64,000 nt of DNA from Macrostomum lignano (Eukaryota). Position 1 is the first letter of the stretch; every line of letters begins with the position of its first letter. This document shows positions 17,720 through 49,800 of the stretch, one piece after another. The notes beneath the pieces were generated by a model that saw nothing but the letters and a program-made list of their open reading frames with translations, had not been told where the DNA came from and did no database searches. Position numbers and translations under genes: made by a program. The DNA lies in contig NIVC01003187.1 in the NCBI GenBank assembly GCA_002269645.1, positions 49,417 through 113,416 on the forward strand, written 5' to 3'.

Positions 17720-20601
17720 CGGAGATGCAGGAGATGACTGAGCACTAATAATAAGATTACTGGGATGTGCTCACAATCTTATGTTGTTAATTACGATAAA
17801 ATTTAAAATTAATTCGTATAAATGCATATCATACAACATGCATAGGATCAACGCTAGCTATAAAATACTCTGGGAAAATGCGTTTCATTGTTCTGCATTT
17901 TCAAGAAGCGAAGTATTTTAGAAAGTAATAAGTCCGGATTCAAAATTTTACCGCTATACACTATAAAACACTAGCTTATAGTTCTAAATTGTGAAATGAG
18001 CTTTATTTGATTATTCTGTGTTGTATTGACCTGCGCAGACTGTTAATTGGACCCACTTCGATCGATAGGTCGTGTAAATTTCGTATGCTAGATTAATTGT
18101 TCATCCTGGTGTCCGATGCGCTATTTCTCATTTTTTACATGCTAAACAATTAAATGCATGCTGTTTATTTTTGTAGAGAATATAACAGACTATTTTATCT
18201 AGATCGCGTCGCACTATTTATTCATGCGCGTATCATGCATCGTCATCCTGTCATCGTGTCCTCGTGTCACCGTGTCGTTGTACTTTAACAAATTTTAAAT
18301 CGAGTGTACTAAAACAAAATCATTATGTCTGGTATAGCTAGGACATACCGCGTACATGCTAACCGATATCAAACTAAACTATGACGTCATATTATTAATA
18401 TAGTTAGTATGAAGTTTGGAATTTAATATAATGATAATAATCTTCTACTATTGTCATTTTTGTCGCTAAAAAACTTTTTAAAAGCCTTGTTCCTTTTAAA
18501 AAAGTTTACAACTAAGCAACAATTTTATTAAATAAATAACAATTACAAAAGAAAAATAACTATTGCTTAATGTATAACGCACATATTTTAGCTATAATTA
18601 CTAATTAATAGCAATATCCTTGGTGGCTTTTACTGATTTTATTTAAAAGACAGCAAATAAACTAACTAAAAATGCAGGTCAAAATTTTATATACTCGTAG
18701 AATTCTATAAAAATCAGTTCAACCCTAACCGCGAGGTCAAAGCAGTCAGTTTATTGTCAAATTAATATATATTTAGAAAAATCTGGCTTATTGAATTTTT
18801 GACAACGTGCCCCAGGCACGTTTTTAGCTCAGAAAACCGTTATGAGCCAAGCCTTCTTAATCACATATAATTTATAGTCCTTTTTAGATTTTGGAAATCT
18901 CTGACCTCCACCTGTCGAGTTTATTTACCAAGTTTTGCTCGAATCTCCGCTTATAAGAGCGTACTGGAGGCATAGAGAGTCTAGTAAAAGTTAAATTCTC
19001 GTATCTGTCTCCAAAACCATGCAGTCCTGCTTTCAAAACACACAGTGCACTTTCTCAATCTGCTTTTTTGTAGGAGTGCTGAACGCTATTAGTCAACATA
19101 CAAAAATAGCTCTCGAAAGAACTGTGCAATGAGGCAATGGTCATTCTAATGACGTTTTTTGCTGGTTGAGCAGTATGAATGCGCTCACAATCTCTCGTAA
19201 TGAATGTAACCACCCAAATACGTCACGAACCTACTTCATCACTGCAAGCGAGGTGCAAGGGTTTATTGAAACGAAAAATTTTCAGACAACTCGAATTGCA
19301 TGAATTGAGGACTTGAGGCTTGAGTAGAAACCTTCATTTAGTTAGTTTAATATAATTACGGCATTAGGGCGGAAAATAACTTTAAGGCCTATAGTCTGCT
19401 ATTTGCATGCGACATTGGGTTGAATTTGGTGCACTAAATTAGCATGCGGAAACAGTCGATTTTGGTGTGAAGAACTAATTCTGTCAGCAGCTGACACACT
19501 GCACTGGAGATTGCATGCAGTATAAAGCCGTCCCTGGAAGGAAAAGCAACCCTTTTTTCAGTACAAATCACTTTTTTTTACTGTTTTTTTCTATTGAGTC
19601 ACATGCTCACTTGGTCCTGTACCATTGAATGATTTTTCCTAGAAAAAACCTGGATAGTCCTCACCTCACCTTTACGCCCCCTGTGGGGGGGCGCTTCATA
19701 AGACCTAAATTTCACAACGCCTAAAGCACATGACTTCACATCACCTAAATTTCACATCGCCTAAATTTCACAACGCCTAAAATTTCTGCACGCTCCTTCA
19801 CATCGCCTAAATTTCATATCGCCTAAATTTCATAACGCCTAAAACCGAAAATGCATCCTACTTCATATCGCCTAAATTTCATATCGCCTAAATTTCACAA
19901 CGCCTAAAAATCTGCATGCTCTTTCATATCGCCTAAACTTCATATCGCCTAAATTTCACAACACCTAAAACTGAATGTGAAGGAGAGAAGCAAAGATTTT
20001 AGGCGTTGTGAAATTTAGGCGATATGAAATTTAGGCGATGTGAAGGAGGCTGCACTTTTGATTTTAGGCGTTGTGAAATTTAGGCGATATGAAATTTAGG
20101 CGTTGTGAAGTGTGGTGGTTTTAGGGCCGGGGCTGTTGCCCCCAGGACCCCGGGTCCTGCACGTAATGGCGTGGTGAACTATCTGTGCAGTATGAGACTG
20201 GTATGGCCTTTATCCCAGCCAGCGATGCTCACACCTGCCTCCCCTGGCGGGCTGATAGCTCAAGAGACTCTGTCTCCTGATTTTCACCTTGCAAGGCGCA
20301 CTTCGAAGGGTACTCGTCCCGTGGGTGTTAAGGCAGGCCCCCTTGGGCCCTGCCGAGCTGATTCGTTGGCGCCGGGTCCTGGTGTGACCATAAACGCACC
20401 CTCTAATGTCCCAGTGTAACTCCGTGCTGATGGACGCTTGGCCAGGGAGTAGTCTGGTCGCTAACGGTTCCCCTTGCGCTTTTGGGTCCCCCCGCAGGGT
20501 GGTATTTTGCTTTTTGGGGGCCTGCCGCTTGGTTTGGGGTTGCGGCCTTGCGGCTCTTTGCCTGTGTTCTGCAGGAAGTCCCACCTTTTTACTTCCAGCC
20601 A

Positions 20602-22121
20602 ATGGCTTCTAACCGAAGTAACAAACCGGCTGTGGATGACACAGTGCCTCCGGCCTCGGCTGGGGCCGTGGACTCCTCGGCCATACCACCTGCTACCATC
20701 GGGGACGCCTCGGCGAGACCCGTGGAGCCAACTCTGAGCGGTGCCTCCGAGAAGACACCTGCTACTCCAGCTGCTAAGAAACGCAGCACCACCTCTGGAG
20801 CTGCCCGCCGTCGACTTAACAAGGCGAGGCGGGCCAAGGAGGGCGGAAGCCAAACCGGTGCCAGGGGCCAACGGCCCGCGGCAGCGGAAGCTTCCCAGTC
20901 TGGGGCGGTGGCGGAAGAGGGCCTCGAGCCCACGGAAGCCCCTGCCCAGGATAGGGAGGCCGATGCAGCCGGGAGGGTGGACAGCCCACCTGAAGAAAGC
21001 TCCACTGACCCCGGGCCTCCTACGCTGATGCGGCAAAGAGGCAACCGGCGGTTGTCATCCTGGGAAAGGACGCGCGCCTGTCTCCCGATCAGCTGAAGCA
21101 GGTGAGAAGTGCCGTTGATGGCCTCCTGTGGAAGCAAACTCTGAAGGGCACGCCTCTGAACATTCATTCGAATGCGACGAGGGACTCGTGCCTTCTCATT
21201 TGGCCCAGTGATGCTGACTCGGGTCGGCGGCTCCTTGAGCTGCTGCCCGAGCAGAGCTGGGACCTCAACCTAGCCTTCTGCAGAGAGGACGAGCGCCCCC
21301 GGACCAAGAGGCATCGAATCTGGGTCCCGGCCAGGAGCGTTGTTACCTCTGCTGACGAGCTCCGGAAAGGACTGCTAGCAGTCAACCGGGAGCTTCCCGC
21401 CGCGGGCCTAGTGGTGCATGACACCCTTAAGCGCACCGACGGCACTGGCTTCACAGCCATCCTGGGGCTGTCGGACGCCTGGATGAGGCGTTATCCACAC
21501 GGCAGCTTCATCAACGTCGGCCTTTGGAAGCTGCGCATCCGCTCCTACGAGGCCGACCCTCCCCGTGGCAGTGAGCAGGGCGGGCGGGATGCGGAGGCGG
21601 CCGGGGCCGAGGCGCAAGCCTCTGCTCAGACTGCCAAAGCAAACCGCCCTGCCCGGCAGCACGGCCGCGCGGGCAAAGCTGAGCGCGCTGCTGAGGGCGG
21701 AGGCGACCGACGCCCGGCGCGTAGCACCAAGCGGCGCGGCCTGTACCAGCGTGCAGCTGAGGCAGTCCGTACCGCCAAAATCTCCCAGCTGAGGCGAGAG
21801 GTCGCCGGGACGCCTAGGCGCACCAGTTCGTCCAGGGAGGGTGGGGACGTCCCAGCTGGGCCCAACCCCTCGGGGCAGGGCCGACTGGAGACGGACCCGC
21901 CTGCCCAGGCGGCTGGCTGCTCCAGGGCATTGGGCCAATCTGAGGCGGAGGACCCCATGGATGGTGGGCAAAGGGCGGCGAACGCTGCCTACTGCCTTCC
22001 GGCCAATCGGGGGCCTTTTGCTGAAGAAGAGCCCATGGACACCGGCGACCCCGACCCGAAGCCGGTGAGCGCCGAGGAGGAGGAGGAACTCCTGGCGGCT
22101 GCAACATCCGATCTGCAATGA
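20602..22121 (+). pseudogene. LINE ORF1 (gag-like), one apparent -1 frameshift near 21020
   Basis: ATG at 20602; ORF pieces 20482-21096 and 21102-22121 are in different frames and join if one base is restored near CCTACGCTGATGCGG; position upstream of ORF2. Confidence 0.75.
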
Positions 22122-25100
22122 TGCCAACGACTACCTGGTGTCTGCAGATCAACACCCAGCACTGCGTGGCGGCGTCGGTCAACCTGATGCGCACGGCAGA
22201 GCAACAGCTTCCGGGCCTGGTCTTCGTACAGGAGCCCTGGATGACTAAAGGTAAGCCAAATAATGTGCCATCTTGACTTACTGACTTAGCTGCAGGGGGC
22301 GTCCGGCGGATGCAGCGAGGAGGCGGAGGAGACCGCCCATTCCGCTAGCCCCTGGCGACCAACGACTTCCGTTGAAGTGGTGTCGCTCAGGGGGACCCGT
22401 CGGTCTCGCCTGCAGCGCGGTCCTCCTCACCGACGGTGGGGAAGAAATCAGCTCGTCCGGTGTCCCTGAGGTACCGGGCGAGCAGTGGGATGCTCTCGGG
22501 CCTGCAAACGTCGGAGAGAACCGGGTTTGGCCCGAGGTGAGTAAGCCTGGCCCTGGTGAAAACCGGGCAGTGGCAGATAAAATGCTCGGCGTTTTCACTG
22601 CCTGAGCGGCAGAAGGGGCACCGCTCCTCGGGTACTTGGCCCTGAAGGAAGCGGTGGCGAGAGAAGCAGCCATGCCCGGAGAGGGCCATGCTAACTGCTC
22701 TGAGGTCTCTGCGGTTGAGCCTGAGGAGGGCTCTACGCAGGAGAGGAGAGGGACAGGGGACGGCAGCACGGGATTGCCTACAATTCCGGGTGTCGTGCCA
22801 CCTGCGGAGATGCTCGGAGTCAGCCCAGCGCTTAACGCGGGAATTGATCACCGAGGCGGGGATGGGGCACCCGGGCCCGGCCCCAATAGCGCGCCGGCGG
22901 AGCCAGCCTTGGCCAGCAGGTCAGCGCGCTCGTTGCCGAGGAAGCCGGCGTGGCCCGGGATCCATCTGAGCTCCACCTGGTTGCCTAGCGCAAGCCCGTT
23001 GAGCTGGGTGTTGCAGTCCAGGACGGACCTGGAGCTGGCGGTGCTGCGGCAGAGGGCCCGAAGGGCTGCTTGGCTGTCAGAGTGAAAAATAAATTTCCGG
23101 CCGCTAAGCTGCCTTCGGCGCAGCTCTGCCGCGCAGGAGCTGATGGCAAGCACCTCGCTCTGAAAAACACTGGAGTTGAGCCCAGTGTGCTGGGAGTAGC
23201 TCCACACCACTTCTCCCTTGAAGAAGACGCAAGCTCCGAAGCCTGAAAGACCATGCCTCATAGAGCCGTCAGTGTAACAGTGGACTTCAGAGTCGCTCCA
23301 GCTGTCACTCGCCTCGTGTCGAGGCTGAATGGTGACCTTATACCTTTGGCTCAGGAGAAGGGTGGCTGGGATCGAGTCCGTGAGGATGTTGAGCCCGCCA
23401 CACTCCTCGAGAGCCTTGAGGCAGAGGTCAGAGTGCGGGATAAGCGACCGCTTCTTAAAGGCCCGCACTTTCTTGAAGGCCACCCCAGCATCCAGAAGAC
23501 GCCGGGTGCTCATCGCCGCCTCTCCTTTGATATAAATATCCAAAGGAGGGGCGCAGAGGAAGGCATTCATGCCTTCAAAAGGAGTAGAGGGTCTCAGCCT
23601 CGCCCAAGATCTCTGGTCTTTGCTGCAAAAGCTTTTGAGGCATGGATGAGACCTGATCTCTCGACTGGGGACATCTGTGTTGTTCAAATCAATAACCTCA
23701 TTCCCAATAAACCTGTGCTGGTAGCTTCTGCCTATTTCCCGGGCGATGCCCCAGTTGTCTGCGACGCGTTAGTCAACCTTACTGACTATGCTGCGTCCCA
23801 TCGGTTCGAGCTGCTCATTGCAGGGGATGTGAACGCACACCACCTGCATTGGGGCAGCAAGAACATCAATAGCAGAGGCGAGGAGCTGCTGGCCTATGTC
23901 AGCAGCACTAACCTCAACTTCTGTAACGTGGGCAATGCACCAACGTTCAATAATGGGCGGTGGGCCGAAGTCATCGACACCACCATCGCCTCACCCGGAC
24001 TGCTTTCCGCAGTTACGGGCTGGCGAGTGTGGGACGAGGACTCGCTCTCGGACCACCGCTTTATCCGCTTTTGCATTGGGCCGACCAAGCAAAAGCCTAA
24101 GGTCACTTGGAGTCGGAACGTCAGAAACACCGATTGGGCCGCCTTTGGCTCGAAGCTGAGCCGCGGCCTTCGGGATCTTGACCCCCCCAGTGACCTCTCT
24201 GACTGCCAGGTGGTGGACGATCTCGCCTCCTCCCTGGGCGGGGCGATCACCACTGCCTTTGAAGCAGCCTGCCCCCTAAAGGCCTATAAAGGCAAGAAAT
24301 CTGCTCCCTGGTGGAACCCAGAGCTCGGGGCCCTTCGGCGCCGAGCCAGGACCCTCCAAAGGCGAGCGCTCAAAACCAAAGACCCATCTGACAGAGAGGC
24401 CTATACCCGTGCGATCCACGAGTTTAAGGGCCAAGTCAGAAGGGCCAAGACGGCCAAGTGGCGCCAATATTGCGAAGGGCTTGAGGGCTCTCGCCCCGTA
24501 GCCCGCGTGGTTAAGGCACTCACTAATGACCGTTTTTCTAAACTCTCTGTTGTGAAGAGACCTGACGGCTCGGTCACAGAGAGTTCGGAAGAGACTCTAG
24601 AGCTCATGCTCAACAGTTTTTTCCCTAAATCTCCGACTCAGCAGGGCCCGCCCGACCACACAGTGGGAGGGCAAGGCCTAGCAAAGTCTATGATCACCAA
24701 AGACCGCATTATTAGAGCGGCAAGGTCCTTTAACCCGTTCAAGGCGCCTGGGCCCGACGGCATCTACCCAGCGTTCTTGCACGAGGCGGTGAAAAACCAC
24801 CGCTTCCTGGACCTGCTCTGTCGTCTCCTTCGAGCTTGTATGGAGCTGGGCTATGTACCAGTTGCATGGAGAGAGGCCCGGGTGGTCTTTATCCCCAAGC
24901 CTGGAAAGAGCGACTACCAATCGGTGAAGGCCTTCAGGCCTATCAGCCTCACTTCTTTCTGCCTCAAGCTCCTCGAGAGACTGGTGCTTTGGCGCCTACT
25001 TTCGGTCGAGCTGAAGCGCTTCCCACTCTCGCAGAACCAGCACGCCTTCCGCGCGGCAGGTCAACCGAGAGTGCTCTCCATGTCATTGTTGACTTCCTGG

Positions 25101-27112
25101 AGAGGGCCGTTCTTGGCAGCGGCTTTGCCCTCTCGCTTTTCCTGGACATTGAGGGGGCCTTCGACAACGTCATCTTCGAGGCCTTTTGCAGAGCCCTGGA
25201 ATCCAGGGCCACGCACCCTCACCTTGTCCGGTGGATCATGTTCATGATCCGAAACCGCACTGTTGTGGCCCACCTGAGCGGCAGCTCTCTTTCGGTGCCT
25301 GTCCTGAAAGGGGGCCCCCAGGGCGGCGTTCTCACCCCCGTTCTCTGGAACATGGTCATGGATGAGTTGCTTTGCAGTGATCTCCACGACCCCATTCTCA
25401 AGGTGGGCTATGCCGATGATGTGACCGCGATATGCGCGGGCCCCTCGGTTGATACCATCAGAGACCTTCTGCAGGGCTTTCTGGGACGAGCGGAGCGTTG
25501 GGCAGACCAATGTGGCCTTAGACTCTCAGAGTCGAAAACCACAGCAGTCATGTTTACCAACAAACTGCTCTGGACCATTAAGCCCCTCACCCTCTATGGA
25601 AAGAATATTTCCATGGAGAAGCAGGTCCGCTGCCTGGGCCTCACTCTGGACCACAGGCTTAACTGGACTCCGCACATTCAAACTAAAGCCAAAAAAGCCC
25701 TGGCTGTACTGGCTCAGATCAGGCGCGCCGTGGGCACCACCTGGGGGCTCACCCCCAGGAAGCTGTGGTGGATTTACACTGCCATCATCCGCCCCTCGAT
25801 CAGTTACGCCAGCCTCGTGTGGGCTAGCGGCCTGAGCGTCAAGAGCAACCTCGACGCTCTCTACAAAATCCAGGGCAGAGCCTGCCGCATGACTATGGGC
25901 GCTCCACCCTCTACTCCTTTTGAAGGCATGAATGCCTTCCTCTGCGCCCCTCCTTTGGATATTTATATCAAAGGAGAGGCGGCGATGAGCACCCGGCGTC
26001 TTCTGGATGCTGGGGTGGCCTTCAAGAAAGTGCGGGCCTTTAAGAAGCGGTCGCTTATCCCGCACTCTGACCTCTGCCTCAAGGCTCTCGAGGAGTGTGG
26101 CGGGCTCAACATCCTCACGGACTCGATCCCAGCCACCCTTCTCCTGAGCCAAAGGTATAAGGTCACCATTCAGCCTCGACACGAGGCGAGTGACAGCTGG
26201 AGCGACTCTGAAGTCCACTGTTACACTGACGGCTCTATGAGGCATGGTCTTTCAGGCTTCGGAGCTTGCGTCTTCTTCAAGGGAGAAGTGGTGTGGAGCT
26301 ACTCCCAGCACACTGGGCTCAACTCCAGTGTTTTTCAGAGCGAGGTGCTTGCCATCAGCTCCTGCGCGGCAGAGCTGCGCCGAAGGCAGCTTAGCGGCCG
26401 GAAATTTATTTTTCACTCTGACAGCCAAGCAGCCCTTCGGGCCCTCTGCCGCAGCACCGCCAGCTCCAGGTCCGTCCTGGACTGCAACACCCAGCTCAAC
26501 GGGCTTGCGCTAGGCAACCAGGTGGAGCTCAGATGGATCCCGGGCCACGCCGGCTTCCTCGGCAACGAGCGCGCTGACCTGCTGGCCAAGGCTGGCTCCG
26601 CCGGCGCGCTATTGGGGCCGGGCCCGGGTGCCCCCATCCCCGCCTCGGTGATCAATTCCCGCGTTAAGCGCTGGGCTGACTCCGAGCATCTCCGCAGGTG
26701 GCACGACACCCGGAATTGTAGGCAATCCCGTGCTGCCGTCCCCTGTCCCTCTCCTCTCCTGCGTAGAGCCCTCCTCAGGCTCAACCGCAGAGACCTCAGA
26801 GCAGTTAGCATGGCCCTCTCCGGGCATGGCTGCTTCTCTCGCCACCGCTTCCTTCAGGGCCAAGTACCCGAGGAGCGGTGCCCCTTCTGCCGCTCAGGCA
26901 GTGAAAACGCCGAGCATTTTATCTGCCACTGCCCGGTTTTCACCAGGGCCAGGCTTACTCACCTCGGGCCAAACCCGGTTCTCTCCGACGTTTGCAGGCC
27001 CGAGAGCATCCCACTGCTCGCCCGGTACCTCAGGGACACCGGACGAGCTGATTTCTTCCCCACCGTCGGTGAGGAGGACCGCGCTGCAGGCGAGACCGAC
27101 GGGTCCCCCTGA
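22118..27112 (+). pseudogene. LINE ORF2 (APE-RT-RNase H-zinc finger), interrupted at 22273-23592 and frameshifted near 25057
   Basis: APE motifs QINTQH, VQEPW, GDVNAHH, SDHR; RT motifs KAPGPDG, FRPISLTS, FLDIEGAFDNV, GGPQGGVLTP, YADD; RNase H motifs YTDGS, FQSEV, SDSQAA, WIPGHAGFLGNERAD; CPFC...HFICHCP. Confidence 0.93.
22273..23592 (-). mobile_element. Inverted 1.32-kb copy of the same LINE's 3' end (matches 25906-27227), inserted in the endonuclease region
   Basis: Minus-strand ORFs reproduce the RNase H and zinc-finger peptide exactly; begins with the reverse-complement tail TTGACTTACTGACTTAG; only single-base indel differences noticed; no TSD at its junctions. Confidence 0.93.
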
Positions 27113-28149
27113 GCGACACCACTTCAACGGAAGTCGTTGGTCGCCAGGGGCTAGCGGAATGGGCGGTCTCCTCCGCCTCCTCGCTGCATCCGCCGGACGC
27201 CCCCTGCAGCTAAGTCAAGTAAGTCAAGTGGTGGTTTTAGGCGTTGTGAAATTTAGGTCTTATGAAAGCGTCCCCCCCCCCTCTGTGGCTGTGGCCCTTT
27301 GTCCTTACACGGCCCCTGGCCTGAAGCAAATAGATGTTTTAGCTTTAGTTAGGTCTGCATTATACTCTCATAATTCTAACCAGTCATAACACACCCCAAG
27401 GCAGATGATAGGCTTGTAAGAGCCAGCAACTGCCCTCCAGTGTGTCCCGAAGGACCCAAACGGGCAAGAAGAGTAGGGTCGATTCTCTCTATCTCTGGGC
27501 TTAGCCTTGCAGTTAAAGGGGGAGAGAGGGAGCGCATAAACAAGCAGGGCAGGGAGGGGACCAGGAGTAAATAAAGGGTAAGATTTGGGGTGGGGCTAGG
27601 TGTACTCTTAGCTTCAGATCACGTGCCCTTTGAGTGAACCCGATTTCTAATATAGTTTTACTGTTTGATAAAATTAATTGCATTTTCTAACCATTCTACT
27701 GCTAGTAACAGTAATAAATTTTACTTCTAAAAAAGTTGCTCAAACAAATTAACCGACCGTGCCTAGGAATCCAGACTTCAATCGTACAATCAGGATTTTT
27801 GTACAAAATCAACTGGTCTTTTCAAAGTTGAGATGCAATTGACACCGTTGGCAAAAAAAATGTACCAAACTCAAGTAAACTCAAAGCGAGTGCCACCACG
27901 CGGCCCTGACGAGCGGGCACCTCCAACATCGTGATTTTTCTATTAACGCACCAAACCAGGCATGTCTGCATATTATACAATGGTCCTGCACCATGTTCAG
28001 CATTCAGCTCTGTCTGGACGACCTTCAGGACCTTCAACGGTGCCAAGCTATTCCTGCTGACATCGGCTGGGAATCCGGAGATTCGGGATGACATGGACAT
28101 CTGCTGTCTTCAATGCGGAAATCTGCACTGGCAAAGGACACTGCTGTCC

Positions 28150-29022
28150 ACTACTTTTGCATCACAGGAATCCGATGTTCGTCTGGCCAAGGGCTCAGAG
28201 GTGTGGAGTGGTGAGCAAGTTGTTTGCCGCTTGGCTGATCCATTCAGAGGACACTGGTATAACATCACATGTGACAGATTCTTCTCGAGTCCTGCGCTGG
28301 CCAATCACTTGTACCGAGAAATGGGATTCACATTTCACCATGATGCGAACTCGTGGTGGCCTGCCAGCCGATCTCAAGAATTCAACTCAAACCATGGCTC
28401 CACACAAGATCGAATTCCGGTTTTCTGAGGAGCTCACGTGTGTGTCCTACTGCCCCAAGGCGGGCCGAAACGTGATGTTGCTGTCCACCATGCATCACGA
28501 CAGCAATTGCTTCCCAATGGCAAGCCTGTAGCAATAGGCACGTACTACAATTCCACCAAGAGTGGCACGGACACCTGCAACAGGATGTTCCGCACATCCG
28601 AGTCCGACTGCAAGCGAAAGTCCGACTCATGCGAGAAGGCAATCTTCTCCGGCGGCGTACTCAACATAGCAGCTGTGAATGCCGCTGCTATCTGGACACT
28701 GGCGCACCCGGAGCTCTGCGCCTCGCCGAACTATCGCAACGAGTTCCAGCGCAAGGCAGCTGCGCAACTTCTGCAACCTCTGATCGAGGAGCGCTCGCAA
28801 TCGGCCGCTCTTCAGAATCTGTCCGATCATCACCGGCTGATGTTCCAGCTCGCAGGTTGTCAAATCAACGACGAGCAAATGAAGGAACAGGCACGCGAAG
28901 AGGCGGCTGTGGTGTCAGTTGGTGGCAAAAAGCGCTGTGCAACATGCGCGAGACAAAAGTCAAAGGACGAGAAGCGTGCCTTGTGTGCGACAACAAGGAA
29001 GTGCTGCATGTGGGACGAATGA
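28150..29022 (+). pseudogene. Degenerate piggyBac-family (PGBD-like) transposase fragment
   Basis: Across frameshifts: YNITCDRFFSSPALANHL, FRFSEELTCVSYCPKAGRNVMLLSTMHH, YYNSTKSGTDTCNRM, LNIAAVNAAAIW, and a Cys-rich C-terminus; flanked by inverted ~150-bp repeats (27890-28045 vs 29260-29600). Confidence 0.8.
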
Positions 29023-29668
29023 ATTTGCCGAAGACACTGCGATGGAAGAGACAGTGAGTCACCATTACTGCGCACGTTTTGCACCAAATTTAATAGAGAC
29101 AATTGATTCCGCTTTTGTGTCTATGTGTCGGTGTTCAGATCCTTCCGCTCTGAATTTGCTGTAATATCATTTTTGACAAATTAAATATTTTATAATTTTT
29201 AGTCGCCAGTTAAATATGTAACTCTCCAATTTAACAAGGTGCAAAAGCATTTTATAATATACAGACATGCCTGGTTTGGTGCCTTGATAAAAAAATCACG
29301 ATGTTGGAGGTGCCCGCTCGTCAGGGCCGCGTGGTGGCACTCCGTTGAAGGTCCCGAAGGTCGTCCAGACAGAGCTGAATGCTGAACATGGTGTAGGATT
29401 ATTTTATAATATGCAAACATTCCTGGTTTGGTGCCTTGAAAGAAAAATCACGATGTTGGCGGTGTCAGCTCGTCGGGGCTTCGTGGTGGCACTCGTTGAA
29501 GGTCCCGAAGGTCACCTGTATGTCGGATGTTGGAGGTGCCCGCTCGTCAGGGCCGCGTGGTGGCACTCCGTTGAAGGTCCCGAAGGTCGCCTGTATGTCT
29601 ACAGGTCAGCCTAGAGGGTCGCCATCGTCCATTTCATTCATCGATTATCCAACGGCGACGGTGCGGTA

Positions 29669-29973
29669 CGAAGGGGCCTGATCTGCTACAACTTGGACTA
29701 GCTCGGCATGAATTTTGGTTGCGTTTTCACCGAGCTGCGATCGCATGAAAACATAAAATCTCCACTGATTAGCAGTGATATTTTCCATTTGAAGGCTGAA
29801 AACGAGACTGTACGTTAATCAAAATGCTCTAGGAAGCGAAAAAATCAGTGCAATGAGCTGAAAATTTATGAACAAACGCAAAATATACTCATATGAGATT
29901 TAAGAATGGTTACATTTAAACGTTTATTTAAAAAGTTATGAGCCAGTTGCCAAGACTTTTTGCGCACCCCTCG
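29669..29973. mobile_element. Possible degenerate mariner-like MITE
   Basis: TA|CGAAGGGG ... CCCCTCG|TA ends with weak further pairing; the right end reads TACGAGGGGTGCGCAAAAAGT on the minus strand. Confidence 0.3.
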
Positions 29974-31097
29974 TATTCCATTTCAGTTTTGGGAACGCAG
30001 CCGTCTCTGAGATGCCGATCGGGTGCTTTTGTTGAAGGTCCCAACGGTCGCCGCCGATGCTCCAGACGGAGATGAAGGGGACCCTGGTGCCTGGGACGCT
30101 GAGAAAAAAGGCCTCTACGACAGATGGACCCAGATTATAGAGCCAATAGGGATTCACCACAAAAGTTTATACAGTGTAGTGTTTGCTGTCCTTGCCACTA
30201 GTGTCTTGGACAAAAATCGTTGAATATCTCGACGATGCTGACGTCGGATGACTTTGAAAGTTAGTTCGTCGGAAAGGGCGGAAAATTTTGATCGATATGG
30301 TGGACTTTTACGAAAATCGGTAATTCGGTTTGCGAGCTATCGTGAAATGGGTCGTGTGTATTTGTAATACACCCCCGTGGTCTTTCCCCACGGGGAAAAA
30401 TAGCGTGGTCTTTCTACTGTTAAGTGTCACTATGTGGGGCAGAGAGTGTTCTGGGGCTTTGGAACACCAGGTCTTCAGTGGGGCGGGATATGTGAAGTGG
30501 AGGGGCATGGTCCCTTTCTGCTAAGGAAAACAACAAAAAATTCTTAAAACAAAAATATCAGAAGCTACTCGTCTGTGCGCATAAAATTTTTTCACTACAT
30601 TCCAATGAAACTTGATGGTGCCATAAATTAATTTACAAAAAACTTTTTAGCGCTGACATGGGCAATAAAACTTGCTTTTATTAGCTAATCATAAAAAAAA
30701 GCTTTAGGTACGCTCGTAGTTAGAAAATGGTTTAAATGACAGAGCGGCAGAAAAAAAGTAAGAAAGAGCGGCAGGTGGCTCAACGACTCAAACAATCGGC
30801 CATGGCAACCGAACTCTGTCAATTATTACAAAGCTTCATCGCGCTGGTCTAACACAGTCCTCTGGCCCAGCAGGAGGCTCGAATGTGCGTTTAGAGACAG
30901 AGAGAAAGAGAGAGAGAGAGAGAGTAGCGCAGAGACAGGAGAGTGGCAGCCGGTGAAGCACAGAAATGTGCAGTGCGAACTGCCAAGTGGCGGCGAGGCG
31001 CTCATTTAACTTGGCTGGCTTAGACCGAAACCCCCTGCCCATCGCGTGAGAGCGCTCTTTCTCATGCTAACTCTGGCGGCCGGAGCAGGCTAAGGCT

Positions 31098-34000
31098 ATG
31101 CAGAATTCGCCTCAGCGGCAAGGGCAGCAGCGGAGGCCGCAGAAACTGCAGCTGAAGCCGATGCAGCCACCGGCGGCGAGGCATCAGCTGGCTGACCTGG
31201 GCGCCTCCGGCAAGCTGGTGACATTCTACCGGAATGGCGATCCGCACTTTCGCGGCCTAGGCGTCTCCATTAACGATCGGACTTTTGTTTCCATGGCAAC
31301 GCTGACCGCTTGGCTGAACGAAAAAATAAGCACGCCGTCGGGAGTGAGACACGTCTTTAGACTGCCAGATGGGAAACAGGTTCGAGTCTTTGTGTGGAAT
31401 ACGTGCAATTATGCTGACTAGCATAGACAGATGGAGAAGTAGTTTCAGCTAAAACAAGAAAGCTGACACTTACGAGTATCGGAGCGGCGGGTAACGCGTC
31501 CTACGATTCAGTCCCAGGGTTCGATTCGACGCACGATCGTAGAATAATCTGGGGTTTGTGGACGGAATGTGTGGGCGTACTCAGGGGCCGGCACAGCCTC
31601 CTGTGATTTTATGACAAACTATTCCTGTCCACCTGTCTACCCGAATTCTATTTTGCAAGGTGACGCAACTTGCCGATTTTGAGGCCGGCGGTCACTACGT
31701 GGTGTCCAGCAGCCCCAAGCTGGTCCGCTCTGTAGAGTACGGCGGTCCTCGGCCGGCCTGGCGAATGAAGCCGCCGAGCGCCAAAGCCGGTAAGCGCACC
31801 CGCGACGATCTTCGTCTGCTGTTCGGTCGGGAAAGCGCCGGGATCGCCGGCGAAAGCGACGAGCAGCGCCGACACCTGCAGCGGCACGGAGCTGCCGGCC
31901 CGAGGAGCGGCGGTGATGCGACTGGCCAGGGAGCTCCGAGCAAGCCGCGCAGCGTGGTCTTCATCAGCAACACGCACCGGCAGAGCCGGGAGCGCCTGCT
32001 GATCAACCCAGGCAAGGCTGCCGCAGCTGACGGGCTGGATACTATGTTGGAGGACCTCGGCAGCCTGCTGGTGATGGCCAACCCGCCTGCTACTTGCCTT
32101 TACACAGCCTACCCGCCATACAGAAAGGTTTGCTGGAAAATTTCTAATGCTTTTTCTTATGAAACTGTAGATACGAAAGTATAAAACGTCCTTCTGCAGG
32201 TAATAAAGCTGTCGCAACTGTTCAGCGAGTACAAAGACTACGACAGTTTCATCGCCTGCGGCCAAGAATTCCTGCCAGCAGAGTTGCGCAGCCGACCGCT
32301 GGAGGCGGCTGCTGTCTGGGGTGACGAACCCATACGTGGCGGCGGCGTTGGAGACGGCAGTGAAGGAGGGGCGCAAAGACTAGGAAGGCTGGAGCCGGTG
32401 GCGCCAACGTCCGGGCAGGTCAACGGGTCGACGCAGATGCAACAGGCTCAGGCGCAGCAGCAGACGCAGCAGCCACCGCAATCACCATTGCCACCGCCGC
32501 CTCCTCCGCCGCCGCCTCAGTGGCCTCGCAATGGCGAGGAGAATCGGCTTGATGAGCAGCAGCGACTGCGGCTGCTTCAACTCCAGCAGGAGCAGCTTCA
32601 GGTTCAGCAGCAGCAGCAACTGGGAGACAGGAGCCCGGCAGTTGGTATGGAGTTTCTCTAATAGAACAGAAAGCACTGTGCTAGTTTTCACTGGGCCAGC
32701 TATTTTTTATGTTTTGCCCCTTATCTCACAGCCGGCAGATACGAAGCAGCAGAAGACAGCGACGCTGTTAACAGTGAAGATGAAGAGATTGGCAGCTTCC
32801 AGCAGCTCCCGCAGCTGTCGGGTCGCGAGTCGATGCAGAAACCTCCAGCGGCTACCGTCAGAATCCGCGGAACCTTACACAGTGAGCTGCTGCTTATTTT
32901 TTTACTTCAACCATCATCAACAAGCACTTGCTCCAGCTGCCCGTTCCACCCTCAACCGCCCGCTACTTCCAGCTTTCCCAGCTCCCACAGCAACAGTGCC
33001 GAGTCGTCAACAGCTGCAGCCACCGGACGTGTCTCTCCATTTGGATTGGGTCTACGGCTGCAATAGCTCGGCGGGCCTGCTGGCGCTGCCTACCGGGGAC
33101 CTGCTGTACGCCTCCGGAAATGTTCTGATCCTACTGGACTCAAAACGGCATAGACAGAGGCACTACACTGAGCACACTGCACTGGTCACGTGGTAAGTTG
33201 TGGGGCAGTGAAGCCATGCAGCCACTGAGACGAAGATGCGTGGGTGATCGTGCGTTGGTACCTGCGTAGTGCGGGTTCAGGGGTCAGCGACTGACGTCTT
33301 GATAGCTTCGGGTCTACTGTTGCCTTGGTTTTTAGCAGAGCCCAGAAAACCCCTCGCCTGGCGAATTCTCTGAGGACAAAGAACCCAGGATGGTCGTGAG
33401 ATTGGAACTGAGGAAAAGCAAGGCATTTGCGTTGTATTATTGTCGGTTGTATTGTACGGGTATGACTTGCCTGGCTTGGCTTTTTCCCCTAGACCATATC
33501 CAGACTGAGTCGCTCTGCTTGCCCAAAAATCCGCAGCGCCGCAGCCCACCCTGTGAATGCCTACATCGCCTCTGGCCAGGCGGCATCCCGATCCGGAGCT
33601 CCAGTCCAAATCCGCATCTGGGACGCCGAGAGTCTGGAGACTCGGGTTGTCTTGTCCGAGCCGCATCTGCAGACTGGCATCACGTCGATTTCATTTTCGG
33701 GTGAAAGCCTCGGAGCTTACCTGCTCGCTGTGGACTCGCCGAAGCCGCCCGGACATCGACAGACGTTGACTGTCTTTGACTGGGCAGCCCGTCGGGAGGT
33801 GCTGAAGTCGCAGACTGCGCGAGATCAAATCAGTCGAGCTGTGTTCCACCCGGAGGACGACTCAATAATCGTGACTGTGGGCGCCGAGCGACCGAGCTTC
33901 TGGCGCATCTTCCATGACAGTGCGGGCCGGAGCCGGGCACTGCGCGACAAAAAGAGCGGCGTGTTTGCACCTGGATCAGCGGCACCAAGCCAGAAAGATG

Positions 34001-37000
34001 AGGTGACGGCCGTGGCCTTCGATCTTGTCGGCAACGTAATAACCGGGGACTCGGCTGGCCGCCTGCAACTGTGGTGTCGCGACCAAGATGACGCATTCGT
34101 GCTCAGACCAGTGGAACGACTGAATCACGCGCATTCGGTGTGTAATATCTAAATATACTAAATATTATACTAAAAATTAAAATTAAAATACTAACTCTAG
34201 CTTTAGTATAACCTGATGTGTCTATTCGATAAATCTTCGTCTAATTTATATGCTAACTTCACACAGGAGGCAATCCAATGCATGTACATTCTGGGCGATG
34301 GCGCTCTGATTTCGGTGTCGGCAAAGCGAATTCACGTCTGGGACACACTGAATGGCTACAGTCATGTCAAGGAGGCATTGGTAATTCGTCAGATTTTGCT
34401 CTTGGTTGTGCCCTGGTGTCCTGAACTTACATAGGTCCTGAAATAACTCTCTGAATTCAGACCAGCGGCCAGGTCTCGGAGGACATTGCCGCATTGGCAC
34501 TGAAGCATCCGCGTAGTCTAGACGGACGGCTGGTGGTGGCCACAACTGGCAATTGCATCCTAGAGGGCTCTCTGCACGATCAGTTTTTCTGCCTTGTACA
34601 GGTGCGGCACAGTTTTACATTAAAAAAATAAGGGGTCATATCTCTACCTTTTGAATTAATACTCGCACAACAGGGTCATAAATCGTCCTCAAACGCTAAC
34701 GGTTTGATTGTGAGCGCCCATCCGAGTGAGCCGGATCTGGCAACCTGCGGCGGCGCCGACGACGACATGTCAGTCTGCCGTTGGTCGGCCAGTCAGTGCC
34801 GCTTGGTCTGGCGGGTTGCCGTCGAAGACGCCTGCTCTAGCGCGGCCTACCATCCTCGAGGCCACCTGCTACTGCTGGGCACGGCCACGGGTCGGATAGT
34901 GGCACTGCAGCATGCGCGCGGGGAGTACGCCATATCCTGTCAGGTCACCGAACGAGGCCAGGCCGTTGTGTGCGTCCGTTTTAGCAGCAGTAAGTGACAT
35001 GCTTTGGAATTCCTTTGTAATGGAAAAATGTTGCTGACAGTAATTTGAATACGAGCGTACAAAGCTATCAAAATCAGCAATGCGACTGTTATGATTGATG
35101 CCATCAAGGTTCTTTCCTTCTTCGACGCTTCTGTTTAGTTCAATAAGTTTTGTTTTCAAACCTGAGATGAGACGCGTCTATAAAGTACCCGCCTAACCCA
35201 ACTCCGTGCTGCCAAGACGGCCGTCTGCTGGCCCTGGGCACCAGCGACGGGCGAATCTACATGATGTCTGTCGAAGACAACGGACTCGTTTATCGAAAAT
35301 ACCGTCAAGGAACTCTGACCGGCCACTCAAGTCCGGTGGTCCGGCTGGACTTTTCAGTGGATTCAGCCACCCTTCGAAGTCAGTCTGAGGACTTGGAAGT
35401 CAGATTCTGTAAGTCTGTGATGAAAATTGGATTCTTGTCGAGTTTACAAGTCAAAAAGCCGCGAGTCTTTCTAGCTGTTCGCTGGTGCTTTAACTCTGCA
35501 CGCAGGGTCGGTGCCAAACATGTCTGAGGTCCCTGGCGCGGAATCCGTCAGTAACGTGAGATTCTCCACCGAGACATGCTCACTGAGTTACTATCACGCT
35601 GCAGCTTGGCAGCTTCATCAAGCCAGTTCAGACACTGGCATCACAGCCTCGTGCCTGTCCGGTCACGGAGACCTGCTCTGTGCTGGCGACAGCGCAGGAC
35701 AAGTGAGCATCTTCCGCTATCCAACGCATCCACTACAGGTGAGCCAGCAAAGCTGAGTGGTAGACGAAGGAATATCATCTGGCTGGGTTATTTTGCAATG
35801 GCCTTACTTCCCTATCCCACAAATTATGGTTTACTTTGAGGTAACCTTAAAAGGTCATTTCGATGCAATCAAAGGGTATTGCGATCAACTACTCGTAGTA
35901 TAGAGTACAAATGAAGCATAGACATTTGTGACTCGTTTCGAAAAGTAACCCACCCTCAAGACATCAAGTTTCATTATACCTTAGTAGCTTCGTTAAGGGT
36001 GATTTGTAGCATCAACTAATAGTACGCCGCTAAAGTTTTATAAGTTAACATTGTATATGTCAGTTCTACATGAAACCGCGAATGGCATGAAATGGCGTGA
36101 AACCGTGAATGGCTCATTAAATCAGCTACATGTATGGTTCCTTAGATTGTCTCATCCTACTCGGATAACTGTGGAACATCTAGAGCTATTACGTGCTTAC
36201 AAGCCCTGACCTCACGGGAGGGGCGCATTTATTAGATCAAAACCAATCGGGGCTTGCCGCGTCTGCGTGGTGACTCTGGATAACTTTTGTGCTGATCGTA
36301 TGGCCTCTGCGCGGGCGAAGTATCTTTCAAGTGTCTGCCCTATCAACTTACGATGGTTTTAGGTGATTTGCCTACCATGGTTATAACGGGTAACGGAGAA
36401 TCAGGGTTCCATTCCGGAGAGGGAGCCTGAAAAACGGCGTGCACTTTAGCAGCGTACTATTAGTTGATGCTACAGATTAAGCTGAGTGATTATCGGTGAC
36501 TCGAGATTAAGGCTTGTCTTTTTCATTTGGTTTTTACATGTAAAACTCACACTGGAGACGAGAAGAGAGATGAGAAATCAGTGGAGAGAAGAGTAGAGAG
36601 AGGAGAGAAGAGAGGAGAAGGGAAATGAGAGGAGAGAAGGGAGAGAAGAAGAGAGAGGAAAATGGAGAAGAGAGGAGAGAAGAGAAGGGAAAGGAGAGGA
36701 TAGGATAGGATAGGATAAGATAGGATAGGAGAGGAGAGGAGAGGAGAGGAGAGGAGAGGAGAGGAGAGGAGAGGAGAGGAGAGGAGAGGAGAGGAGAGGA
36801 GGGGAGAGAAGAGGAGAGGATAGGAGAGGAGAGGAGAGGAGAGGAGAGGAGAGGAGAGGAGAGGAGAGGAGAGGATAGGAGAGGAGAGGAGAGGAGAGGA
36901 GAGGAGAGGAGAGGAGAGGAGAGGAGAGGAGAGGAGAGGAGAGGAGAGGAGAGGAGAGGAGAGGAGAGGAGAGGAGGGGAGAGGAGAGTAGGGAAGAGGA

Positions 37001-37351
37001 GAGGAGAGGAGATATCAGAGAAGAGACACGAACCTTGAGTGCGCTGGATTGCTATTATGGATTTCCTACAGACCCAAAGGCCAAATAGAGAGGCTTGTCG
37101 GGCCGCATGTGGCCTGCTGGCCGGAGTTTGTTAACCCCTGTATGTGGCTCGTATATAAACGAACCCGCCCTGTGCTTAAACCCCCACCCTTCCAATCTAC
37201 CACCATACAGAGCCAGTGCGTGACCTCCGACGCTCTGGTGTCGTCAGTTCGCGATTTGATGTTCGCATTCGGCGACTCCAGACTGCTGGTCACGGACAGA
37301 GAGGCCGCTTCGCTGATGCAGTGGAGTCTGGTGCCGGAGCGGCGCTCCTGA
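31098..37351 (+). CDS. DCX-EMAP: DCX-EMAP-like protein: two doublecortin domains, Q/P-rich linker, HELP motif, WD40 (TAPE) domain. Exons approx. 31098-31379, 31660-32127, 32200-32644, 32732-32881, ~32925-33192, 33537-34137, 34267-34380, 34461-34601, 34674-34989, 35217-35408, 35506-35738, 37211-37351
   Basis: DCX motif VTFYRNGDPHFRG...GVRHVF; second DCX-like block ending FIACGQE; HELP motif LHLDWVYG; WD repeats (IASGQ, VITGDSAG, LTGHSSPVVRLDFS, SIFRYP); GT-AG sites with consistent phases; the 32881-32925 junction is less certain. Confidence 0.88.
36005..36474. mobile_element. 470-bp non-autonomous TIR element (32-bp TIRs, TGT...ACA ends, GATT duplication) carrying an 18S rRNA fragment
   Basis: TGTAGCATCAACTAATAGTACGCCGCTAAAGT (36005-36036) vs ACTTTAGCAGCGTACTATTAGTTGATGCTACA (36443-36474), 1 mismatch; GATT at 36001-36004 and 36475-36478. 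Confidence 0.85.
36071..36438 (+). pseudogene. 18S rRNA (fragment): Degenerate fragment of 18S rRNA 5' domain (about 370 bp), not a functional rRNA gene
   Basis: Conserved SSU motifs GAATGGCTCATTAAATCAG, GGATAACTGTGG, CTGCCCTATCAACT, CCTACCATGG, GGAGAATCAGGGTTC.ATTCCGGAGAGGGAGCCTGA, with small insertions and substitutions; no rDNA flanks. Confidence 0.93.
36560..37140. mobile_element. (GAGAG)n microsatellite followed by the right end of a hAT-like MITE (same family as 39846-40369); left end not seen
   Basis: ...ATAGAGAGGCTTGTCGGGCCGCATGTGGCCTGCTGGCCGGAGTTTGTTAACCCCTG matches the 3' end of the 39846 copy. Confidence 0.7.
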
Positions 37352-46800: not shown

Positions 46801-49800
46801 TAATTCCTTAAGCACGATTTATTACCTCCAGGAATGCTCCTTGTTCATCTTTGACAAGCGAACGGCCGACAAGTTGCACAAGCCGAAACGAAAGGAAACA
46901 GTGTCCGAGATACTCAGGCGGGAAGTCAGATACCTGGAGAGATTCCGGCATCCGAAACTGTTGCAAATCTGGCACCCGATTGAAGAGTCCGGGTGAGCAT
47001 TAGCAGAATGAGTTTAGACGCGTGATCGAGTACCCAGCTGCGGAGTTTTTTCAGGTGTTTTTACCCCTATAAAAGTACCCTTCGGAAGCCGCAATCATGC
47101 ATCCTTACTTTTCCTCAAAGTCTGTGTTTTTTTCTAATCTTGCCTAAGCCTAAGCTCAGCTCAAGGATGCCCGCCGGCTCAGAGGCTGAAGCGAGATAAA
47201 GAATCTCTGCCCCCCCCGCCCCCGACCCGAGTGGCTCCAACAGGTGGCTGAACGCTAACAGGCAGATGGAAAGCGGTAGGCACGGGGTCGGAGTCATTGG
47301 GTGCTTTCTGCTTGCTGACTAAGAGATTAAATTCGGAGCGGGCGATCCTGGACAGCGATGTCTGAATGAACGAGGTAAAGTGCAGGTCCATTGACAGCTG
47401 AAGCAGACGGACGCTGTACTTGCAAGTCACGCAGATTTCGCTGGCCGCTCGCATTAGCGAGATGAGAAGATTTCAGGTTTTTTTAATTCCCAATATCTCA
47501 CCGGCTGGACTTCCGGATTGCAAATGCAGCAAGCAGGTGCTTTGTCGGGAGCACGAGAATTTCCCGCAGGATTTTTTCAGTCGGAATTTCAAGTCAAATC
47601 CAATCGGATTAGAAATCTAGTCTACGCCTGTAGTCTACTTCTAATCTAGTCTAGTTGACGTCTAGTCTAGCCTAGTCTAGTCTAGTCCAGTCTAGTCTAG
47701 TCTAGTCCAGTTTAGTCTAGACTAGTTCTAATCTAGTCTAGTTGATGTCTAGTCTAGTTGATGTCTAGTCTAGCCTAGTCTAGTCTAGTCCAGTCTAGTC
47801 TAGTCCAGTCTAGTCTAGTCCAGTCCAGTTTAGTCTAGACTAGTTCTAATCTAGTCTAGTTGACGTCTAGTCTAGCCTAGTCTAGTCTAGTCTAGTCCAG
47901 TCTAGTCTAGTCCAGTCTAGTTTAGTCTAGACTAGTTCTAATCTAGTCTAGCATTGTCTTTAGACTGTATTTGACTCGTACATGTAATTGAGATTTGCAA
48001 GTTCAGTAGGTGAGATAATTGGGAATTCAGTACTCGAATTTTTGAAATTATGAATTAATTTTGATTCGACATGCAGCGAATTTAGGGGATATTAGGCTAC
48101 TCTAAATACAGGGTAGATACAAAGACAAAAGGATGCAGCGTCTCTCATTATTCCCAGCCTCGCTGTCTTCTCAATGCCTTCTATGGCATTTTCCATATGC
48201 CGATGTCAGCTGCTGTCCTGAGAGCAGAAGCGCGGGAAGGGCTGCTGGGTTAATCGCTGACAAACACAGGCTGCAATTAGACAGGCGGGCAGGCAGACAG
48301 GCAGGTCTCTAATAAACATAAGACCTCATTCCTAATGGAGCTCTCTGCGAAAAGGAGAGTGGGTGAAGCTGTATTCAGGTAGATGAAGACCTGCACACTT
48401 TTTTATCCGAGCTCATGCATCTATGCCTGGCGTTGTAAGCTTTTTTGTTTAACCTTTTCTACCCATATTTTCCCCGGTTGATAATCACCCTGACTGTGCA
48501 GCGACAATTCTGGGTATTAAAACTTACCCCCCCCCCCTATGACATTGTCTGGAATTGCGACTGGGGCCGCCAGCACCAGAGGCGCCAGACCTCGTTGGTG
48601 TCAAAGTAGTTGTTGAGGAACCAGGGGCACCACTACTGCTGAGAAGGGGGCGCCATCATCTTTTACAGCTTATTAGGGGCACTCCGGCGGGTTGCCATCA
48701 CAAACCCGAAAAATCACAAACCCGAAAAATCACAACTCCGAAAGTACTTCCCATCATAAACCCGGAATATCACAAACCTAAAATATCATAAATCCGGAAA
48801 TCATAAACCCGGAATATCATTAACCCGGAATATCATAAACCCGGAATATCATAAACCCGGAAATCATAAACCAGGAATATCATAAACCCGAAATATCACA
48901 AAACCGGAATATCATAAACCCGAAATATCACAATACCGGAATATCATAACTCCGAAAGTTGCCCAACGGTATTTTGGTTTACAGAGTTCTGATATTTCGG
49001 GTTTGTGATGTTCCGGGTTTAAAATGCCCCCCTTCCTTGCCTCCCCTGGTGCGGGTCTGAGAACACACACACACACCGGTGCACACTGCTACAGCTTGCA
49101 CAGGGTGACAGGGCTCTGCCATTCTCACTTGTCAGGCACTTTGCTCCCCGGGGGGTGAGCCCTCAAGAGCTCGTATACCGGTATAGGACAAGGTAATACC
49201 TACAATCGGCTATCCCAGACACTACTCTCCACGTTTGTTGGTTGAGGGTTGTAGCCTAGTGTTTAGAGCGTCGGACTCACGACTGGAAGGTCGGGGGTTC
49301 GATTCTCGATCTACTCAGAACAATTTGTGTCCTTGAGCAAGGCACTTATAACTCTGCATTGCTTCAGTTCACACAGTTGTAAAATGGGTGCCAGCATTAG
49401 CTGGGGTAATTGAGGGTGTGTGTGGCGACCCCCCCAGTCCTTGGACTGAACAGCCGTAGCAGCCTTCAGATGCGCCGCGCAATAGCTGCGGCTGAGCTGT
49501 CGGTTGCACATCTGCCCATTGAACAACGTCAAGTCATGGCATCTGAAAGCGTGTTTCAAGTTTCTCCTAACTTTAGAAAAAAATGATTTCCACATCACTA
49601 ACTATCGAGATGATTGTCGTTTCTTTTGTTAACTCGAAACTCGGTGTCACGCAATCCTTTGTTGCTCACTCGGTTTTCGGTTACCGAAGCGTGCAAACTA
49701 AAGTAAACCGGCTGACTGATCGAGTCGTCACTCCCCGATTCCCCTTCGATGCGCACCGCAGGGACAGCCTGGCGTTCGCCACCGAGCCCGTCTGGGGCAG

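Follow-up and report, generated by a model that had tools for sequence, protein, structure and literature searches.

The 64,000-nucleotide stretch of Macrostomum lignano DNA analysed here (assembly GCA_002269645.1, contig NIVC01003187.1, positions 49,417 to 113,416, forward strand; hereafter the window, numbered from its first letter) contains, within an intron, a small element bounded by terminal inverted repeats (TIRs) whose interior is almost entirely a fragment of the 18S ribosomal RNA (rRNA) gene. The host gene encodes a DCX-EMAP protein. The exon upstream of the host intron ends in ...YPTHPLQ at 35738 and is followed by GT, and the intron closes with AG at 37209-37210 ahead of the exon at 37211-37351, which encodes SQCVTSDALV...LMQWSLVPERRS and a stop codon (TGA). 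When joined, the EMAP exons matched positions 5-265 of the 266 positions of the Pfam family Beta-prop_EML_2 (E=1e-54). The element starts 266 nt inside this last coding intron, and since annotation of the sister loci puts the gene on the plus strand, its 18S piece has the sense orientation.

A TIR-bounded 18S rRNA gene fragment in the last DCX-EMAP intron

The reverse complement of the right TIR departs from the left TIR by a single C/T difference, and a copy of GATT abuts each arm as the target site duplication (TSD; Table 1). A repeat search recovered the pair as 35-nt arms, 94% complementary and 406 nt apart, the arms being longer than 32 nt because GATT is partly self-complementary. With up to three mismatches allowed, the 23-nt core of the TIR was found at only two sites in the 64 kb, both of them the TIRs, where shuffled sequences predicted none; a 14-mer of the TIR with two mismatches allowed revealed no further sites in the window. 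In the predicted RNA fold of the sense intron the TIRs would form a long stem (minimum free energy -172 kcal/mol; z = -5.0 against shuffles).

Between the arms, all but 16 nt at the left end (36037-36052) and 4 nt at the right end is clearly 18S. The left spacer may itself be a degenerate continuation of 18S positions ~38-52, given its gapped likeness, by eye, to AAGATTAAGCCAT. Close to the 5′ end of the cargo, the duplication at 36070-36096 reads ATGAAACCGCGAATGGC followed by ATGAAATGGC and precedes GTGAAACCGTGAATGGC, that is, one full and one 10-nt partial extra copy of the unit GTGAAACCGCGAATGGC stand before the real one. A 6-nt insertion at ~36126-36131 repeats the CTACAT from 36066, 60 nt upstream. 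The right TIR resembles 18S positions ~608-629 by eye, but 28 of 300 shuffles matched or beat the best local alignment, and an 18S derivation of the TIRs or flanks was rejected.

The longest stop-free frame in the element is 68 codons and no Pfam domains were found in it. At 470 bp, non-coding and with arms complementary at 31 of 32 positions between two copies of GATT, the element has the size (under ~800 bp), TIRs and TSD of a MITE, a miniature inverted-repeat transposable element. Thus the architecture described in the sequence-only reading holds: direct reading and the repeat search bear out the 32-bp TIRs with one mismatch and GATT on both sides, the best Rfam match (190.5 bits) accounts for an interior nearly filled by the 18S 5′ domain with 16 and 4 nt left over, the fragment does end 4 bp (GTGC) from the right TIR and does carry a duplication (27 nt) at its 5′ start, and the exon and profile match together with the strand of the sister loci place it in the last DCX-EMAP intron in the sense orientation.

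Table 1. Coordinates of the element, its parts, its host intron and its counterparts in the two sister loci (window positions unless an accession is given)
Feature	Position	Strand	Basis or remark
Whole element, 470 bp	36005-36474 (inverted arms; GATT copies outside)		Direct reading
TSD left copy, GATT, 4 bp	36001..36004	.	Direct reading; same in 3/3 locus copies
Left TIR, 32 bp, TGTAGCATCAACTAATAGTACGCCGCTAAAGT, begins TGTAG (TGTNR pattern)	36005..36036	+	31/32 complementary to right arm
Spacer TTTATAAGTTAACATT, 16 nt	36037..36052	+	Outside Rfam match
18S rRNA gene fragment (cargo), decayed pseudogene	36053..36438	+	Rfam RF01960; reference 18S positions ~53-419
Local tandem duplication, 27 nt, 5′ end of cargo	36070..36096	+	Rfam: 24-nt insertion relative to model
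Junction GTGC, 4 nt, from end of 18S homology to right TIR	36439..36442	+	Direct reading and 18S alignment
Right TIR, 32 bp, ending CTACA	36443..36474	-	Direct reading, repeat search
TSD right copy, GATT, 4 bp	36475..36478	.	Direct reading; same in 3/3 locus copies
Host intron, last coding intron of DCX-EMAP gene, GT...AG, phase 0	35739..37210	+	Joined-exon profile match
Element in sister locus L005	NIVC01001233.1, 19657-20123		4 substitutions and 3-bp indel relative to window, all in cargo
Element in sister locus L006	NIVC01000352.1, 19664-20133		Identical to window

The cargo is a decaying partial 18S pseudogene

The sole gathering-level Rfam match in the window is to SSU_rRNA_eukarya, at 36053-36453 (+), covering model positions 53-429 of 1831 with 190.5 bits (E=2e-53). 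The 18S homology itself stops at 36438, 4 bp before the right TIR; in 18S numbering the cargo starts at ~41-53 and ends at 419. A second Rfam score for the cargo was 181.9 bits; the resulting range of 182-190 bits compares with 287.2 bits for a functional full-length 18S over the same region of the model. That functional reference is L004:3289-5119, from a metagenome contig, and a second reference, L003, is likewise a metagenome 18S; the two were used in place of M. lignano's own 18S. The cargo is ~15% different from each of them, while they differ by 7.5% from each other, and in columns where both agree the cargo differs at 35/307, a part of which must be lineage-specific. Changes were also counted by hand at positions that Rfam shows in upper case (near-universal), the rearranged 5′ end being left out: there were ~6 changes at ~100 such positions in the ancestral element (for example UAAUAC>UAUUAC, GAU>CAU and GAGAAAC>GAAAAAC) and none in the reference.

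Two 18S-like states, CCGCG and GATGG-TAGGTGATATGCC, are kept in the NIVC01001233.1 copy (g1) and lost in both the window copy (g2) and g3, indicating that decay is ongoing. The cargo is therefore a promoterless, partial and decaying pseudogene; its partial span, low score, mutated conserved positions and rearranged 5′ end set it apart from a functional or variant 18S gene.

The motifs ATGGTTCCTTAGAT, GGTGACTCTGGATAAC and GCTGATCG.ATGGCC are of animal type and are common to the cargo and both reference 18S genes, and they are unlike the 18S of diatom prey. For this reason the host is the likely source of the cargo, as far as its motifs can tell.

In the right flank of the element (36475-36534), the words GATTAAGC, AGATTAAG and GCTTGTCT match 18S positions 30-49, just 5′ of the cargo start. 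Only 0.4% of 60-nt segments of the window reach the count of 7-mers that this flank has in common with 18S positions 1-60, a signal noticed post hoc. In a test for a repair patchwork, the enrichment of cargo k-mers in the flanks was not significant.

The same insertion in three copies of the locus

The CBM21 protein encoded by a single-exon gene at 16841-17719 of the window has two mates in its 90% cluster, Mlig017224g1 and g3. The two sister loci lie on NIVC01001233.1 (L005) and NIVC01000352.1 (L006), and both have the gene order Secretogranin V, a 107-aa gene, CBM21 and an 1100-aa DCX-EMAP. A protein search started from EMAP-exon sequence yielded nothing beyond a 51% paralogue and did not help. 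Both sister loci align with the window straight across the element, both TIRs are found in each, and the three-way alignment shows the same site, the same flanks and GATT on both sides in all three copies. Since the three copies share site and flanks, they reflect duplication of the locus and not transposition. With the same element in three contigs, neither an assembly artefact nor a read from prey or a contaminant can account for it: the element is genuine host DNA, present in three copies of the locus, and is supported as a transposon-like, non-coding structure bounded by TIRs and a TSD.

M. lignano is reported to carry three subgenomes after a recent whole-genome duplication (PMC10733133). 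We take the three loci to be the three subgenome copies, with which they agree in number; if this assignment is right, the insertion predates the genome duplication. Both sister loci carry the element and neither has an empty site, so that they give a minimum age only.

Over ~5 kb the loci diverge by 1.05-1.86%. The window and L006 are identical over the 800 bp from 35741 to 36540, although they are 1.26% different upstream, which suggests recent gene conversion or recombination between copies. Between the window and L005 there are 4/467 differences in the element and 11/330 in the flanking intron (one-sided P ~0.013, a post hoc comparison). CpG hypermutability was considered as a cause of the differences between copies and rejected: CpG transitions are not enriched, as they number 12 among 108 polarised substitutions while CpG sites amount to 13.4%. 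The DCX-EMAP of the window contig (copy g2, 31572-37351) is absent from the protein collection searched below, whereas g1 and g3 are annotated as 1100-aa proteins.

Searches for independent copies and for a transposase

In neither the 64 kb of the window nor the two sister loci, 21 kb each, did TIR scans reveal an independent copy of the element. The same scan gave 0 matches in IMG/VR and 0 in the JGI metagenomes, and a full-text literature search for the TIR sequence also gave 0. Four 20-mer TIR matches in bacteria among the GTDB genomes had neither an extension nor an inverted partner and were set aside as chance. At the protein level, the seven exact open reading frames (ORFs) of the element are absent from a collection of 15 billion proteins, which barely covers unannotated M. 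lignano DNA, and a concatenated six-frame query of the element retrieved from this collection, in which coverage of M. lignano is poor, only generic 18S read-through ORFs at ~50% identity. Even the young long interspersed nuclear element (LINE) of the window has no M. lignano genomic or Logan counterpart there, being matched only by UniRef entries without contigs; the negative from the protein collection is therefore uninformative on copy number. No integrase gene was noticed among window ORFs of at least 110 aa, the Pfam scan having covered seven ORFs of the window.

Other mobile elements and repeats at the locus

A block of ~7.6 kb at 19675-27288 is present in the window copy only; L005 and L006 go directly from the equivalent of 19674 to that of 27289, indicating that the block was inserted after the locus duplication. 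It contains a non-long-terminal-repeat retrotransposon, with Exo_endo_phos_2, RVT_1 and RNase_H in ORFs at 23253-25247 and 24836-27112, and inverted arms (22282-23592 and 25906-27217) that are 99-100% identical. In a second window-specific block, 27864-30559, a perfect 43-nt inverted repeat (27888-27930 and 29526-29568) delimits another element, and an ORF within the block resembles the piggyBac-type DDE_Tnp_1_7 weakly (E=0.003, below the Pfam cut-off). Both blocks lie just upstream of DCX-EMAP copy g2 and may have disturbed its annotation or expression.

At 7760-8246, 11255-11627, 19723-20122 and 48702-49026 there are palindromic elements of foldback or MITE-like type, whose TIRs bear no relation to those of the 18S-bearing element. 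The first of these appears to be absent from L005, and small TIR elements may have moved since the locus duplication. In the host intron itself, ~65 nt downstream of the 18S-bearing element, lies a GA-rich repeat array (36542-36992) with copies spaced 10-19 nt apart, and beyond it, at ~37.7-39.3 kb and 39.9-40.3 kb downstream in the window, ORFs of highly repetitive sequence point to more tandem arrays. A match to Rfam sR14, an archaeal family of C/D-box snoRNA-like RNAs, at 35598-35648 (-) is weak, scoring 14.8 bits where the cut-off is 38 (E=0.46); it lies antisense to the penultimate EMAP exon and is most likely due to chance.

Termini and transposon class

Ginger1 and Ginger2 DNA transposons have TGTNR termini and 4-bp TSDs (PMC2836005), the TSD being 4 bp in Ginger1 and 4 or 5 bp in Ginger2 (PMC10045372). 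Their TIRs measure 40-270 bp and 50-180 bp, respectively, and Ginger1 targets CCGG or CCGT/ACGG, while Ginger2 prefers AT-rich RTATAY (PMC2836005). The termini of the element, TGTAG...CTACA, fit the TGTNR pattern of Ginger2/TDD, and GATT/GATT fits the 4- or 5-bp TSD of that group, on the basis of a single insertion. GATT does not conform to the Ginger1 target duplication. The empty site can be rebuilt as GGGTGATTAAGCTG, in which the target GGGT-GATT-AAGC (TGATTA) departs from the Ginger2 preference; as this is a preference, one site is weak evidence. Taken together, the ends and GATT would be such as integrase-type (Ginger2-like) DDE transposases produce. The Ginger-type assignment of the sequence-only reading is thus retained for the TGTNR ends and the 4-bp TSD, and it falls short in TIR length and target site, with no integrase noticed among the window ORFs, for which reason we call the element Ginger2-like in its ends, and not a member of the family.

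Origin of the element

Ds-like elements and others with internal deletions arise by abortive gap repair with template switching, a process that may also underlie Pack-type capture. We consider it probable, if far from certain, that the element was once a small non-autonomous cut-and-paste DNA transposon, now an immobile relic, and that ribosomal DNA (rDNA) filler took the place of its interior during break repair. According to this model, a transposase would have induced a double-strand break in a parent element, and abortive gap repair would then have copied in ~385-400 bp of animal-type 18S rDNA as filler by template switching. The parent would survive only in its TIRs and in the ~16 nt inside the left arm and the 4 nt inside the right arm, and the micro-duplications at the 5′ end of the cargo would be scars of error-prone synthesis. 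The loaded element would have been in the last DCX-EMAP intron before the genome duplication and would afterwards have decayed neutrally. Lacking a promoter and any complete rRNA domain, it would do nothing beyond adding a 32-bp hairpin stem to the pre-mRNA intron, and any consequence of that stem would be speculation.

Several observations weigh against this model. No second insertion and no empty site were seen in the window and sister loci, so that transposition would be deduced from the TIRs, the TSD and the TGTNR ends only, and no integrase-encoding partner was found among the window ORFs. A TIR of 32 bp (35 with the partly palindromic flank) is below the lengths of Ginger1 and Ginger2, and GATT fits neither CCGG/CCGT nor RTATAY. 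Approximately 400 bp is at the long end for gap-repair filler, and there is no clear junction microhomology, at most 2-3 nt (CAC) at the right junction. Finally, the host origin and the age of the cargo are judged indirectly, by way of two metagenome 18S genes.

Non-autonomous transposable element copies in genomes come mostly from amplified families, which makes it possible, if unlikely, that a single 18S capture was followed by repeated mobilisation and that an already loaded member of a multi-copy, rRNA-carrying MITE family arrived in the intron. The ends look intact, with TIR arms matching at 31/32 positions and a perfect TSD. In addition, a cargo change of ~6% at near-universal positions predicts ~3.8 TIR mismatches for joint decay of arms and cargo, where one is seen, a weak hint (Poisson P ~0.1) that the TIRs stayed functional during the decay of the cargo; as proof of mobility after capture, TIRs younger than the cargo were rejected, 3.8 expected against 1 being too weak. 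However, the dispersal of rDNA raised in the sequence-only reading finds no support in the copies seen: an independent one is missing from the 64 kb of the window and from both 21-kb sister loci, site and flanks are common to the three known copies, which therefore arose by duplication of the locus, and the frames of the element match only generic 18S-derived ORFs in the protein database, which counts for little given its poor coverage of M. lignano. Moreover, gap repair can act in place with the TSD kept, and TIRs, TSD and cargo at one locus are therefore no proof that the loaded element moved. It seems doubtful that Macrostomum harbours an amplified Ginger-like MITE family with the 18S fragment as its sole cargo, spread across introns as hundreds of promoterless, hairpin-closed pieces.

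Short inverted repeats are fragile and break at their centre. A palindromic MITE with 32-bp arms and a ~20-nt centre could have come first and a later central break have been repaired, once, with rDNA or an rRNA-derived fragment, in which case the interiors of other TIR family members would be unrelated or missing. The several other foldback or MITE-like palindromes in the window, the merely ~20 nt of non-18S interior that are left and the templated micro-duplications of the cargo, typical of error-prone end joining, are consistent with such a history. Nevertheless, it needs two independent events at one target of ~80 bp, and the cargo lies off centre, with 16 nt between it and one arm but 4 nt on its opposite side; on present data it is also indistinguishable from in-place gap repair, and we regard it as rather unlikely.

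It is improbable that the structure is not a transposon at all, with an 18S fragment joined at a chromosomal break, the inverted repeat created by fold-back template switching and GATT as junction microhomology. The words GATTAAGC, AGATTAAG and GCTTGTCT in the right flank, matching 18S 30-49 in a segment that only 0.4% of segments equal in richness, are what such an event might leave behind; yet this k-mer signal is post hoc, alignment of the flanks and TIRs to 18S does not rise above shuffles, and cargo k-mers are not enriched in the flanks. The TGTNR ends, the exact 4-bp repeat abutting both arms and the 31/32 TIR instead have the make-up of a DDE transposase product. An assembly error, or the mis-joining of prey or contaminant 18S to the contig, has nothing in its favour except that an rRNA fragment is an odd thing to find in an intron; three separately assembled contigs with the same site and with a few private substitutions and an indel, and a cargo that is rearranged, decayed and TIR-bounded and not a clean rRNA read, reduce its likelihood to practically nothing.

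Significance

A non-autonomous DNA transposon with captured host sequence is a known kind of structure; what is unusual is the rRNA-gene cargo and the integrase-type ends in a flatworm. On the break-repair model, the element would be a tidy and well-dated case of host rDNA taking over the interior of a DNA transposon, with an insertion that precedes the M. lignano genome duplication, and a small data point for filler-DNA capture in animals. For annotation, it means that RepeatMasker or Rfam SSU rRNA matches in M. lignano introns need not represent rDNA loci or contamination. The sequence-only reading had warned of a confounder for 18S barcoding, a concern that now looks weak: the fragment is partial (~41-53 to 419) and decayed, presumably lacks the usual flanking 18S primer sites, and poses no threat to barcoding. 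Should many loaded copies exist, they would define an rRNA-carrying MITE family and provide, for a flatworm, the first clue to an integrase-type (Ginger-like) transposon. If such a family is real, its intronic 18S pieces could feed rRNA-homologous small RNAs, and it would be the DNA-transposon counterpart of rRNA-derived short interspersed nuclear elements (SINEs).

Comparison with known systems

The element shares with non-autonomous Ginger2/TDD and Ginger1 transposons (Bao, Kapitonov & Jurka 2010, PMC2836005) the TGTNR termini, the 4-bp TSD, the bounding TIRs and the existence of non-autonomous copies that have only their ends in common, but Ginger elements have longer TIRs and other targets (PMC2836005), and no integrase-like transposase with the ends of the present element was noticed among the window ORFs. 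Pack-type transposons (Pack-MULE, Pack-CACTA, Pack-TYPE; PMC8903248) are likewise non-autonomous TIR elements with a captured piece of a host gene as their interior, and as a TIR- and TSD-bounded element with captured host sequence the present one corresponds to them, with an rRNA gene and not a protein-coding gene as its cargo. Pack-type elements are, however, known chiefly from plants and with protein-coding fragments, often several per element, and have been shown to be mobilised in multiple copies, whereas here a single rRNA-gene fragment is carried in an animal.

Internal-deletion derivatives with filler, made by abortive gap repair of Ac/Ds and P elements (PMC3260210, PMC4423477), resemble the element in retaining only the parent termini around foreign filler with small templated duplications at the junctions. 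Their filler is usually a few to tens of bp, in contrast to ~400 bp of rDNA here, and the process can act in place and keep the original TSD. Among retroposons, the SINEs derived from 28S and 5S and the Cassandra terminal-repeat retrotransposons in miniature with 5S (PMC4994717, bioRxiv 10.1101/2023.07.14.548913) are also mobile sequences that come from an rRNA gene. They use an RNA route, have an internal pol III promoter or long terminal repeats (LTRs), end in tails or LTRs and have longer, variable TSDs, whereas the element is bounded by TIRs and a 4-bp TSD, ends in neither an A-rich nor a simple-repeat tail inside the TSDs, and has as its cargo a promoterless internal piece of 18S, which is made by pol I. 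Finally, Pokey, a member of the piggyBac family, and its MITEs in Daphnia rDNA (PMC4912750, PMC4260951) are also DNA transposons tied to rDNA. Pokey inserts into 28S genes at a TTAA target; here the relationship is reversed, with rDNA inside a transposon that lies in the intron of a protein-coding gene.

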